Below, in pieces: positions 43,502 to 56,348 of a stretch of DNA of 64,000 nt. This stretch comes from Macrostomum lignano (Eukaryota), in NCBI GenBank assembly GCA_002269645.1, contig NIVC01000094.1:1143304-1207303 (forward strand). Reading direction: 5' to 3'. The translations under genes and the position numbers were made by a program. The notes beneath the pieces are model-generated. The model ran no database searches. It saw nothing but the letters and a program-made list of their open reading frames with translations, and was not told the origin of the DNA. How positions within the stretch are numbered: the stretch's first letter is position 1; each line of letters starts with the position of its first letter.

Positions 43502-43852
43502 ATGTCAAGCGCCGAGCAGATCTGCGAGAAGCTCCGGCAGCTCATCGAGACTGGCAGCGAGACTGACGCCATCTGTCTGGTCAAACAGGCGCTCAACAGC
43601 GTCAGCGCTGAGCAGCTGCTGGAGCACAGGTTCCAGGAGCCCGTCGGACTGAAGCGACCTTCAACTGGTCGGCAGTTGCGGGTACTGCGGCCCAACGCGC
43701 TGATGCTGGCAGCGGCCGGCTGGTTCGAAGCCACGCTGCGCGCCTTGGCTCGAACTCGGCCCGCCTGGACGAAGGTTTCGACGTTGAAGACGAGAGCTCG
43801 GCGGCCGAGCAGTACGGGGGCGTCACTGCACTGATGCTGGCCACCATTGCAG
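43502..43852 (+). CDS. Ankyrin-CARD gene exon 1 (net -1 frameshift near 43750-43765)
   Basis: [14 protein letters not shown]...NALMLAAAG, then shifted frame [31 protein letters not shown]|GTGAGC. Confidence 0.75.
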
Positions 43853-46800
43853 GTGAGCTGAGTGGCGGGTCCTGATGATCATTCAAAATAAAAGTACATC
43901 TGACCGCTGAGTGGCAGCCCACTCGGCACTGTCACTGCAATCTGCAGCTTTGAGTGGCGCATCACTAAGCAGCCCTCCTATCCGCTCCAAGGATCGCCTC
44001 CTATCCGCCCCCCCCCAAGATCGCCTCCTATCCGCCCCCCCCAAGATCGCCTCCTATCCGCTCCAAGGATCGCCTCCTATCCGCCCCCCCCCCAAGATCG
44101 CCTCCTATCCGCCCAAGAATCGCCTCCTATCCACCCCCTCCCAAGATCGCCTCCTATCCGCCCCCTCCCAAGATCGCCTCCTATCCGCCCCCTCCCAAGA
44201 TCGCCTCCTATCCGCCCCAAGAATCGCCTCCTATCCACCCCCCAAGATCGCCTCCTATCCGCCCCCCCCCAAGATCGCCTCCTATCCGCCCCCCCCCCCA
44301 AGATCGCCTCCTATCCGCCCCCCCCAAGATCGCCTCCTATCCGCCCCAAGAATCGCCTCCTATCCACCCCCCCAAGATCGCCTTCTATCCGCCCCCTCCC
44401 AAGATCGCCTCCTATCCGCCCCAAGGATCGCCTCCTATCCACCCCCCAAGATCGCCTCCTATCCGCCCCCCCCAAGATCGCCTCCTATCCGCCCCCCCCC
44501 AAGATCGCCTCCTATCCGCCCCTCCCAAGATCGCCTCCTATCCGCCCCCTCCCAAGATCGCCTCCTATCCGCCCCAAGAATCGCCTCCTATCCACCCCCC
44601 CAAGATCGCCTCCTATCCGCCCCCCCCCAAGATCGCCTCCTATCCGCCCCCCCCAAGATCGCCTCCTATCCGCCCCAAGAATCGCCTCCTATCCACCCCC
44701 CCCAAGATCGCCTTCTATCCGCCCCTCCCAAGATCGCCTCCTATCCGCCCCAAGGATCGCCTCCTATCCGCCCCAAGGATCGCCTCCTATCCGCCTCAAG
44801 GATCGCCTCCTATCCGCCCCCAAAGATCACCTCCTATCCGCCCCCCCAAGATCGCCTCCTATCCACCCAAGGATCGCCTCCTATCCGCCTCAAGGATCGC
44901 CTCCTATCCGCCCCCAAAGATCTCTTATCCACCCCCCCCCAAGATCGCCTCCTATCCGCCCCAAGGATCGCCTCCTATCCGCCCCCCAAAGATCTCTTAT
45001 CCACCCCCCCCCAAGATCGCCTCCTATCCGCCCCAAGGATCACCTCCTATCCGCCCCAAGGATCGCCTCCTATCCGCCCCAAGGATCGCCTCCTATCCGC
45101 CCCAAGGATCGCCTCCTATCCCCCCAAGGATCGCCTCCTATCCGCCCCAAGGATCGCCTCCTATCCGCCCCAAGGATCGCCTCCTATCCATCCCAGGGAC
45201 CGCCTCCTATCCATCCCAGGGACCGCCTCCTATCCATCCAGGGACCGCCTCCTATCCATCCCAGGGACCGCCTCCTATCCATCCCAGGGACCGCCTCCTA
45301 TCCATCCCAGGGACCGCCTCCTATCTATCCCAGGGACCGCCTCCTATCCATCCCAGGGACCGCCTCCTATCCATCCCAGGGACCGCCTCCTATCCATCCC
45401 AGGGACCGCCTCCTATCCGCCCCAAGGATCGCCTCCTATCCATCCCAGGGACCGCCTCCTATCCGCCCCAAGGATCCCCTCCTCCCCCCAAGGATCGCCT
45501 CCTCCCCCCAAGGATCGCCTGTACACTCTCTGTGCCTTGTGGGCTGGCCCTCATTGCCCCCGAGGCAATCCTTGTGCACGAGCCCCAAATTAATGCGGCA
45601 AGCGCGCGGAATCGAGTCTTGTTACCATCGGCTTCTGCCGCTCCCAGGCCGCGAGCCGTTCATGCGAGTCCTGATCGACTGCGGCGCCGACCTGAACGCC
45701 GCCAACAGCCTAGGCGACACGCCCATCTACCAGGCCTGCCTAGAAGGTCACGTGACCGCGGCCGAGCTGCTCATCCGCAGCGGCGCCTACCTCAACCTGC
45801 CGAACGCGTCCGGCATCACCCCGCTGATGATCGCCTGCTTCACCGGCGCCGAGGCCGTCGTCGAGCTGCTGCTGCGCTACGGAGCTCGCGTGGATTGTCG
45901 CGACGTGGCCGGCAAGACGGCCGCTCACTACTGCTGCCCGGCCCGCGCCCTGGACTGCCTGCGCCTGCTGGTGCGCGCCGGGGTGCCGCTTGAGGCCGAC
46001 GGCAGCGACGGCACCAGCCCGCTGATGGAGGCCGCCTACCAGGGCGCCAGCGACCAGCTGCTCGACCTGCTGCTTTCTGCGGCCCCGGAGTCCGCGCTGG
46101 CCGCTCGCGACTGTCGCGACCGCGGCGCCCTGTTCTACGCTATCGAGGGCGGCAGCCTGCCGACGTTTCAGCGGCTCCTGCGCGCCGGCGCTTCAACTCG
46201 AGCGGCGCAGCGAGCGGCGTCACCCTGCTGATGACGGCGGCTCTGCGCTATCGCCGGCGACTTGCCGAACTGCTCGTCGACCTGCTGCGCAACGAGGCCG
46301 ACCGCGACGATGAGGACAGCGACGGGATTCGGGCTCGCGACGCCGAAGGTCGAAACGCGCTTTTTTACTGCGTCGCCAATCCGGAGCCGGACCTGCTGCA
46401 GCTGCTGCTGGACAGCGGACTGCCGGCCGAGAAGGCAACGGACGGGTCTGTCTGTCTGTCTGTCTGTCTGTCTGTCTGTCTGTCTGTCTGTCTGTCTGTC
46501 TGTCTGTTTGTCTGTCTGTCTGTTTGTCTGTCTGTCTGTCTGTCTGTCTGTCTGTCTGTCTGTCTGTCTGTCTGTCTGTCTGTCTGTCTGTCTGTCTGTC
46601 TGTCTGTCTGTCTGTTTGTCTGTCTGTCTGTCTGTCTGTCTGTTTGTCTGTCTGTCTGTCTGTCTGTCTGTCTGTCTTAGTGTCTGTCTTAGTGTCTGTC
46701 TGTCTGTTTGTCTGTCTGTCTGTTTGTCTGTCTGTCTGTCTGTCTGTCTGTCTGTCTGTCTGTCTGTCTGTCTGTCTGTCTGTCTGTCTGTCTGTCTGTC

Positions 46801-55800: not shown

Positions 55801-56348
55801 AGACATGGGAGCAACCTGTTAGACATGGGAGCTACCTGTTAGACATGGGAGCTGCGTGTTGGACATGGGAGCTACCTGTTAGACATGGGAGCTACCTGTT
55901 AGACACGGAAGCTACCTGTTAGACACAAATCAAGCTACCTGTTAGACACAAACCAAGCTACCTGTTATCCACAAACCAAACTACCCTGTTAGACACAAAC
56001 CAAGCTACCTGTTAGACAGCACAGCCAGCCTACCACCCCACAGAGCTGGACCAGTCCCAGCGAGAGACAATCGAGGCCTACTCGAAGCGCCTGGGCGAAG
56101 TGGACCTCGCCGAGCTGGCCAGCCAGATGGCCAAACGTGACGTCATTCTGTGCGAGCACAATGCCAGAGTGATGGAGCTCATGAACCAGCGGGCCGAGCG
56201 CCGGGACTACATGCTGTCCCTGGTTATTCGTCGGGGCAAAACTCGAATTCAGGACTTCCTCACCGAGTTAAAGCAGTTCAATCCCCAGGTTGCCATGGAG
56301 CTCAGAGCGAAACTGTTTGTCAAGCCGGAGAGCGAGTTTATGGTCTGA
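43502..56348 (+). CDS. Multi-ankyrin-repeat protein with C-terminal CARD-like death-fold domain; 7 exons, about 1,230 aa after correcting apparent frameshifts
   Basis: Exons 43502-43852, 45648-46445, 47193-47761, 52037-53283, 53354-53493, 53914-54179 and 56044-56348 have GT-AG boundaries and matching phases. Many ankyrin motifs ([70 protein letters not shown]). The last exon has a six-helix CARD pattern. At least 8 small indels break the frame (assembly error or pseudogene). Confidence 0.85.
43972..45520. repeat. C-rich 22-30-bp intronic minisatellite (CCAAGATCGCCTCCTATCCGCCCC) with variable poly-C
   Basis: Direct inspection. Confidence 0.93.
45648..46445 (+). CDS. Ankyrin-CARD gene exon 2 (frameshift near 46210)
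   Basis: CTCCCAG|[31 protein letters not shown]...; donor GG|GTCTGT. Confidence 0.85.
46446..47155. repeat. (GTCT)n microsatellite filling intron 2
   Basis: Direct inspection. Confidence 0.97.
47193..47761 (+). CDS. Ankyrin-CARD gene exon 3
   Basis: CCCTGCAG|(G)[13 protein letters not shown]...GESALTLAV...[12 protein letters not shown]...ELP|GTGCGC. Confidence 0.85.
47965..49290. repeat. 15-bp G-rich minisatellite (GGGAGATGGGAGACA)
   Basis: Direct inspection. Confidence 0.95.
49935..50635. repeat. 14-bp minisatellite (CTGTCTACTCTCTC)
   Basis: Direct inspection. Confidence 0.92.
50760..51738. repeat. Two (CT)n microsatellites (50760-51358 and 51465-51738)
   Basis: Direct inspection. Confidence 0.97.
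52037..53283 (+). CDS. Ankyrin-CARD gene exon 4 (frameshifts near 52148, 52455, 52538)
   Basis: [22 protein letters not shown] / [11 protein letters not shown] / [13 protein letters not shown] / GMNALSHAV / GSTLLHLGA...DKKG|GTGCGA. Confidence 0.85.
53354..53493 (+). CDS. Ankyrin-CARD gene exon 5
   Basis: [21 protein letters not shown]...[10 protein letters not shown]|GTGAGA. Confidence 0.85.
53505..53845. repeat. 26-bp intronic minisatellite (GTGTCGCTCAGGTGTGTCACTGAAAT)
   Basis: Direct inspection. Confidence 0.92.
53914..54179 (+). CDS. Ankyrin-CARD gene exon 6 (two -1 shifts in G runs near 54060 and 54092)
   Basis: [36 protein letters not shown]...LLDR[G][10 protein letters not shown][A]NAFEMCA...LLESLF|GTGAGT. 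Confidence 0.82.
54185..54722. repeat. 19-bp intronic minisatellite (CCCTGTCTCCCCTCTCTGA)
   Basis: Direct inspection; starts about 6 nt after the donor. Confidence 0.95.
55625..56020. repeat. 20-bp intronic minisatellite (TGGGAGCTACCTGTTAGACA)
   Basis: Direct inspection; ends about 25 nt before the last-exon acceptor. Confidence 0.92.
56044..56348 (+). CDS. Ankyrin-CARD gene last exon: CARD-like domain
   Basis: [91 protein letters not shown]; acceptor CCCCACAG, phase matches exon 6. Confidence 0.8.

Follow-up and report, generated by a model that had tools for sequence, protein, structure and literature searches.

Do the scattered open reading frames (ORFs) on the forward strand between positions 43502 and 56348 of a 64,000-nucleotide stretch of the Macrostomum lignano genome (assembly GCA_002269645.1, contig NIVC01000094.1, positions 1,143,304 to 1,207,303; hereafter the window) belong to a single gene, and does that gene encode what an initial annotation made from the letters alone had proposed, a long ankyrin (ANK) array closed by a CARD-like death fold? 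We consider this probable, and read the locus as a real seven-exon M. lignano gene that joins an ankyrin array to a CARD, belongs to a spiralian family, and is interrupted in this copy by indels that are likely errors of assembly. Its product is a cytosolic-type protein in which an N-terminal leader is followed by some 26-29 ankyrin repeats, a divergent CARD encoded by a separate final exon, and an EFMV tail.

Read base by base, the plus-strand junctions have GT donors, AG acceptors and compatible phases at every intron, bearing out the seven-exon model of the initial annotation, its coordinates and the 54179/56044 junction, in which the donor at 54180 is spliced to an exon 7 that begins at 56044 (Table 1). 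The initiating ATG at 43502 has an in-frame stop 16 codons upstream, the stop TGA occupies 56346-56348, and the intervening coding blocks are GC-rich (57-71% GC). The protein is 1,226 residues long from its methionine, in agreement with the length of about 1,230 that had been predicted, although the joined exons are not a single ORF in the window, as they contain seven frame shifts. An earlier, in-phase acceptor that would start exon 4 at 51935 and add 34 residues was dropped: it is unused by any of the M. lignano sequences P0001, P0002 and P0004, and what it adds is not ankyrin sequence. The introns of the gene and the upstream region 40000-43050 are mostly mini- and microsatellite arrays, such as (CTGT)n, (CT)n and units of 21-27 nucleotides (43911-45593, 46447-47190, 47900-49300, 49930-51800, 53495-53850, 54180-54730 and 55900-56020). 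Long spurious ORFs arise from these arrays on both strands, consistent with the reported simple-repeat richness of M. lignano.

A protein search with the conceptual product of the window copy, its frame shifts bridged with N/X, returned as best match P0001, 'hypothetical protein BOX15_Mlig030937g2, partial' (1,240 residues, 95% identity, 100% coverage), followed by four fragmentary UniRef models of M. lignano. The locus of P0001, here L001, lies on contig NIVC01001397.1 of the same assembly, Mlig_3_7 (GCA_002269645.1), and is a copy 99.5% identical to the window gene with an intact frame; over the exons and short flanks identity is 97.9-100%. When the seven window exons are mapped onto L001 they form an open coding sequence of 3,681 nucleotides, whose 1,226-residue product is contained letter for letter in P0001. 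The gene models of Mlig_3_7 come from a genome-guided RNA-seq assembly (StringTie/TACO/TBONE), and both Illumina and RNA-seq reads were used to polish the assembly itself with Pilon (PMC5730564). Since P0001 is part of this RNA-seq-derived annotation, the gene, including its exon 6-7 junction, is already public, in a near-identical copy, and not hidden as had been supposed. The annotation of P0001 flags ankyrin domains only and no CARD; automated annotation thus overlooks the flatworm CARD.

The ankyrin part is clear. All pieces of exons 2-6 match Pfam ankyrin families, and P0001 matches Ank_2 in 13 stretches with E 3.1e-86. A repeat hidden Markov model (HMM) trained on the protein itself delimits 26 repeat cores within residues 65-1084, with two or three more discernible by eye, in keeping with the 20 or more repeats first counted. 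Along the array, repeats of a 'G-x-T-L-L-M' type take turns with repeats of a 'G-R-N-A-L-F-Y' type, and the same alternation is found in the orthologues.

These orthologues place the gene in a family. The best match outside Macrostomum is P0006 of the brachiopod Lingula anatina (1,151 residues, 28% identity over 87% of the length), and a reverse search from P0006 returns P0001 as the best Macrostomum match, at 372 bits one way and 359 the other. The N-terminal 214 residues, among them the non-ankyrin leader, share 40% identity with P0006 (E 2e-55). P0006 has a C-terminal Pfam CARD at residues 1061-1140 (E 3.8e-9, 36.9 bits) that lies above the family gathering score of 23.9 bits, and both a second Lingula paralogue (P0122) and a protein of the nemertean Tubulanus polymorphus (P0121) have ankyrin repeats plus a Pfam CARD on record. 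In the Tubulanus (L002) and Lingula (L003) genes, as in Macrostomum, a separate final exon encodes the CARD and is preceded by a phase-1 intron that interrupts the same codon; in all three phyla the 'QRE/HRS' of helix 1 lies six codons downstream of that intron. The C-terminal residues of the four proteins follow the pattern E-F/V-Y/M-V, and neither E97 nor V100 varies in their alignment (A1: Macrostomum, two Lingula, Tubulanus); this conserved tail supports exon 7 as the true terminal exon. That the tail is a hydrophobic C-terminus of the PDZ-ligand type is speculation. The Macrostomum protein shares with the family colinear full-length similarity, reciprocal best hits, the CARD-exon intron and the tail.

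By these sequence features the family is present in a flatworm, a brachiopod (with two paralogues) and a nemertean, and is not the lineage-specific flatworm invention that had been envisaged; ANK plus CARD proteins were indeed to be found beyond the flatworms, as P0006, P0122 and P0121. Judged likewise from its sequence, an annelid, Owenia fusiformis, probably has the family too. Its protein P0125 has the family N-terminus and ankyrin array followed by an unrelated long C-terminal region (precomputed PF14649) and no CARD, and may be a fused gene model. The NCBI names of P0006 and P0122, 'PP6 regulatory ankyrin repeat subunit A/B-like', raise a different view of the family, that the flatworm protein is a version of the protein phosphatase 6 (PP6) regulatory subunits ANKRD28/44/52, whose count of about 27-29 ankyrin repeats is similar. 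We regard this as very remote. Such names are automatic and similarity-derived, and generic ankyrin proteins score far below family members (at most 302 against 372 bits in one search, and about 400 or less against 1,090 bits in another). The family-specific non-ankyrin leader, CARD and conserved tail are, to our knowledge, all lacking from ANKRD28/44/52.

Is the last exon itself a CARD? Among 24,736 Pfam families the 100-residue exon-7 peptide matches one only, CARD (PF00619), with E 0.0089 and 16.5 bits over profile positions 13-83 of 85, that is, spanning the whole profile; translation of 56046-56345 yields all the CARD-like peptides cited in the initial annotation. Against a profile built from the three C-termini outside the flatworm, hhalign places the flatworm exon in a colinear alignment 83 columns long (E 0.0068), which provides an independent match to the orthologue CARDs. 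When all four C-termini are combined, the resulting profile finds RAIDD (3crd) as its best match in the PDB (E 2.3e-9), and also matches CARD8, CED-3, Apaf-1, NLRP1, ICEBERG, CARD11, CARD9, Dronc and caspase-9; the matches to RAIDD, CARD8, CED-3, Apaf-1 and NLRP1 (E 2e-9 to 1e-5) establish homology of the family domain to proven CARDs. An AlphaFold2 model from the four-sequence alignment (mean predicted local distance difference test, pLDDT, 79.9; predicted template-modelling score, pTM, 0.65) is a six-helix bundle with helices at residues 3-11/13-16, 21-30, 37-45, 49-63, 65-78 and 80-91 of the peptide, the first interrupted or kinked as in CARDs, so that the proposed six helices are present at the level of a model. 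Foldseek comparison of this model with the PDB gives CARDs for all of the best 50 matches (template-modelling scores 0.56-0.73), with no death domain, death effector domain or pyrin domain among them. Pfam scans of exon 7 and of P0001 detect no NTPase, kinase, caspase or death domain, in agreement with the proposal that no NTPase or kinase lies between the ankyrin array and the CARD.

Several observations weigh against this assignment. The Pfam score lies below the gathering score, and hhalign gives the colinear alignment a probability of only 5.6%. The alignment behind the good AlphaFold2 model includes true CARDs and so is not independent of them; from the single flatworm sequence AlphaFold2 builds three long helices (pTM 0.47) and no bundle. 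Exon 7 alone finds only chance matches (E > 1) among PDB sequences with phmmer, its CARD is no more than 17-21% identical to those of the orthologues, and BLASTP of the Macrostomum against the Lingula C-terminus ends before the domain. The low Pfam score, the lack of a PDB match, the single-sequence model and the BLASTP result would suit an unrelated helical or coiled-coil tail with a chance, sub-threshold Pfam resemblance. Such a tail would nevertheless have to occupy the position, follow the intron phase and carry the C-terminal residues of authentic CARD exons known from two further phyla, while matching by chance no Pfam family except CARD and no folds except CARDs, and we hold it to be highly unlikely. 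The last exon is, with high confidence, a divergent CARD. The exon-7 peptide alone gave no match either in a word-indexed protein search or in an exhaustive search of cluster representatives, and these are false negatives, as an exact copy of it is present in each of P0001, P0002 and P0004. The likely causes are that words were sparsely indexed and that the representative of the cluster is without the C-terminus. These misleading negatives are therefore not counted as evidence of an orphan.

The window copy cannot be translated as it stands. The spliced exons are 3,778 nucleotides long (with exon 4 taken from 51935), not a multiple of three, and differ from L001 by seven single-nucleotide indels, six deletions and one insertion, of which six are shortened G/C runs. 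Tiny introns were ruled out as a source of the shifts, every one of which is a single base at a place where L001 differs by exactly one. The two copies also differ by 11 exonic substitutions, hence represent separate alleles or duplicates, and this would fit a true pseudogene, a duplicate of the intact gene with seven real frameshifts. Polyploidy is partial in M. lignano, and near-identical duplicates abound in its assemblies; in Mlig_3_7, duplicated blocks of at least 95% identity account for 180 Mb (PMC5730564). Furthermore, two other long GC-rich ORFs of the window, 3-1994 (minus strand) and 4233-5459 (plus strand), are unbroken, which leaves the clustering of seven errors in the ANK-CARD gene unaccounted for and counts against attributing them to the assembly.

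The remaining evidence points the other way. When the frame is followed no in-frame stop occurs across 1,226 codons, and there is no nonsense codon among the differences from L001. Ten codons differ, six synonymously and four non-synonymously (over 959 synonymous and 2,719 non-synonymous sites), and the ratio of the two rates (dN/dS) of about 0.24 shows the mark of purifying selection on the sequences of the two M. lignano copies. Exons have diverged by about 0.3%, against up to about 3.5% in nearby non-coding DNA. Natural mutation yields a ratio of indels to substitutions far below the 7:11 seen here, whereas the consensus of long reads under-calls homopolymers. P0002, which shares the amino-acid variants of the window copy (I, Q, M), is in frame through 52153, 52535, 54059 and 54090 but is scrambled elsewhere, at places intact in the window; P0002 and the window are thus disrupted at unlike sites, so different assemblies break the gene differently. 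We therefore judge a pseudogene improbable. Because six of the seven are shortened G/C homopolymers, the indels are very likely errors of the long-read consensus, on which reading the gene is functional; in the window's assembly, homopolymer indels would then be disrupting real genes. Divergence between the two copies is a mosaic: the 5' flank (43053-43501) and part of an intron (49300-49950) are 99.8-100% identical, while identity drops to about 96.5% in intron 6 (54730-55845) and in the 3' flank (56444-57770). This pattern suggests that alleles or duplicates have recombined or undergone gene conversion.

Table 1. Features of the ANK-CARD gene in the window, with the frame breaks relative to the intact copy L001 and the CARD-exon junctions of three phyla
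Feature	Position	Strand	Details
Exon 1	43502..43852	+	start codon, ~60-residue non-ankyrin N-terminus, first ankyrin repeats; frame break 43758
Exon 2	45648..46445	+	ankyrin repeats, Pfam Ank_2 E 2.9e-39; frame break 46211
Exon 3	47193..47761	+	ankyrin repeats; 100% identical to intact copy L001
Exon 4	52037..53283	+	ankyrin repeats; acceptor AG 52035-36 as in annotated model; frame breaks 52153, 52463, 52535
Exon 5	53354..53493	+	ankyrin repeat
Exon 6	53914..54179	+	last ankyrin repeats; frame breaks 54059, 54090; donor GT 54180, phase 1
Exon 7	56044..56348	+	terminal coding exon; phase-1 join (C/AG = Gln); stop 56346-56348
CARD-like six-helix domain	56052..56318	+	Pfam CARD, hhalign, AlphaFold2 model, Foldseek
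C-terminal tail E-F-M-V	56334..56345	+	E-F/V-Y/M-V across all four family proteins (alignment A1)
Frame break, exon 1	43758		GG vs GGG in intact copy
Frame break, exon 2	46211		C vs CC in intact copy
Frame break, exon 4	52153		CC vs CCC in intact copy
Frame break, exon 4	52463		C vs CC in intact copy
Frame break, exon 4	52535		+1 C in GC run vs intact copy
Frame break, exon 6	54059		GGG vs GGGG in intact copy
Frame break, exon 6	54090		GGG vs GGGG in intact copy
CARD-exon junction, Macrostomum	54179/56044		LLESLF/Q/LDQSQRE
CARD-exon junction, Tubulanus			LLEKHA/E/MSRKQRE (L002)
CARD-exon junction, Lingula			LLEKYA/C/MDKHHRS (L003)

Elsewhere the window holds further features. The minus-strand ORF at 3-1994, 664 codons long, encodes a different ankyrin-repeat protein (Ank_2 E 1.4e-71) with an N-terminus unlike that of the ANK-CARD family; it runs off the window start, its C-terminus lying beyond. 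The ORF at 4233-5459, intronless and about 63-66% GC, encodes a 408-residue type II regulatory subunit of PKA (RIIa and two cNMP-binding domains). Exons at 19300-19593 and 25135-25383 on the minus strand belong to a gene with large introns for a Cys-loop ligand-gated ion channel (Neur_chan_memb, Neur_chan_LBD). The 2-kb bin 20001-22000 has a GC skew of +0.86 and an AT skew of +0.39 and is probably a strand-biased satellite beside the tandem array behind the ORFs at 22020-23477. Directly downstream of the ANK-CARD gene, on the plus strand at 58084-61145, is the pol ORF of a Ty3/gypsy-type retrotransposon (protease, reverse transcriptase, RNase H, integrase), whose frame shifts near 60603-60618 so that, read piecewise, the C-terminus of the integrase is in another frame. 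An exon at 63520-63825 (minus strand) matches the C-terminal TRAUB domain of the apoptosis-antagonizing transcription factor AATF (E 1.5e-5); its closeness to a CARD gene is probably coincidental.

How does this architecture compare with known systems? Our literature searches for ANK-CARD combinations found Caiap only, and no description of a layout in which ankyrin repeats precede the CARD. Like the present family, Caiap has neither an NTPase nor a kinase and is built solely from a CARD and a long ankyrin array. Its CARD, however, is N-terminal and followed by 16 repeats (744 residues, two exons), as opposed to the 26-29 repeats, specific N-terminus and E-F/V-Y/M-V tail of the proteins described here, and its authors report it from cartilaginous fish to marsupials only, with no invertebrate orthologue. 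The CARD of Caiap self-oligomerises, its ankyrin part binds active caspase, and the protein promotes caspase activity (PMC5662874). Given the opposite domain order, the pairing of ankyrin repeats with a CARD seems to have arisen twice, and the two families are probably independent inventions. RAIDD/CRADD, whose CARD is the best solved match of the family profile, is likewise an adaptor without an enzymatic domain (for caspase-2, in the PIDDosome), but pairs its CARD with a death domain instead of ankyrin repeats, and the flatworm protein has no Death-domain match. Ankyrins 1-3, ANKDD1 and NF-kB p105 also place a death fold behind an ankyrin array; theirs is of the death-domain subfamily (PF00531, as in P0020), while the present protein has a CARD and neither ZU5/UPA nor Rel domains. 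Within Platyhelminthes, the ANK caspases of parasitic species join ankyrin repeats to the caspase pathway, but the protein described here bears a CARD and lacks a caspase domain, and ANK caspases are unreported for free-living flatworms (PMC11463336).

From this organisation a caspase-adaptor role may be inferred by analogy. The ankyrin solenoid would be a platform that binds a client or signal, and the CARD would make homotypic CARD-CARD contacts, either in self-oligomerisation or in recruiting a flatworm CARD caspase (caspase-2-like) or Apaf-1, so that the protein would serve initiator-caspase assemblies as an adaptor or regulator, possibly tethered by its tail to a PDZ scaffold. Platyhelminths have Apaf-1 and one CARD-bearing, caspase-2-like caspase, with CRADD and FADD reported absent; in the same survey of lophotrochozoan cell death, Apaf-1 is the CARD-bearing caspase activator of flatworms, and CRADD the only one in molluscs, annelids and brachiopods (PMC11463336). 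Weighing against a caspase connection, the 64-kb window contains no caspase gene.

The protein might instead be a decoy or inhibitor, its CARD capping or sequestering CARD caspase or Apaf-1 assemblies in the manner of ICEBERG, INCA and ARC, with the ankyrin repeats as an anchor. The CARDs of ARC and ICEBERG are among the structural and sequence matches, an effector domain is absent, and the CARD has changed far more rapidly than the ankyrin repeats (17-21% identity, compared with 30-40%). Sequence does not discriminate between activating, stabilising and capping such assemblies, that is, between activation and inhibition; the best match of the family profile, RAIDD, is an activating adaptor, and Caiap, the only ANK plus CARD protein that has been studied, promotes caspase activity (PMC5662874). 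A decoy is accordingly the less favoured option, unlikely though by no means negligible, and an adaptor remains the reading we prefer. Taking that adaptor further, one can picture an ancient spiralian ANK/CARD/EFYV-tail family, passed over by surveys of lophotrochozoan apoptosis, that in flatworms would offer the single CARD caspase a second platform besides Apaf-1 for its recruitment or regulation, with the solenoid as sensor and the tail on a PDZ scaffold; we put this forward very tentatively, as a doubtful proposal.

CARD adaptors are a known kind of protein, and the gene model itself is already on record; what appears to be new, as far as the literature could be searched, is a family that combines an ankyrin array with a C-terminal CARD, a putative CARD adaptor on a scaffold of repeats. 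The survey of lophotrochozoan apoptosis does not mention an ANK-CARD family (PMC11463336). Spread across three phyla, the family is an unlisted candidate partner for CARD caspases, and as RNA interference and transgenesis are available in M. lignano, the function of the ANK-CARD protein is testable there.

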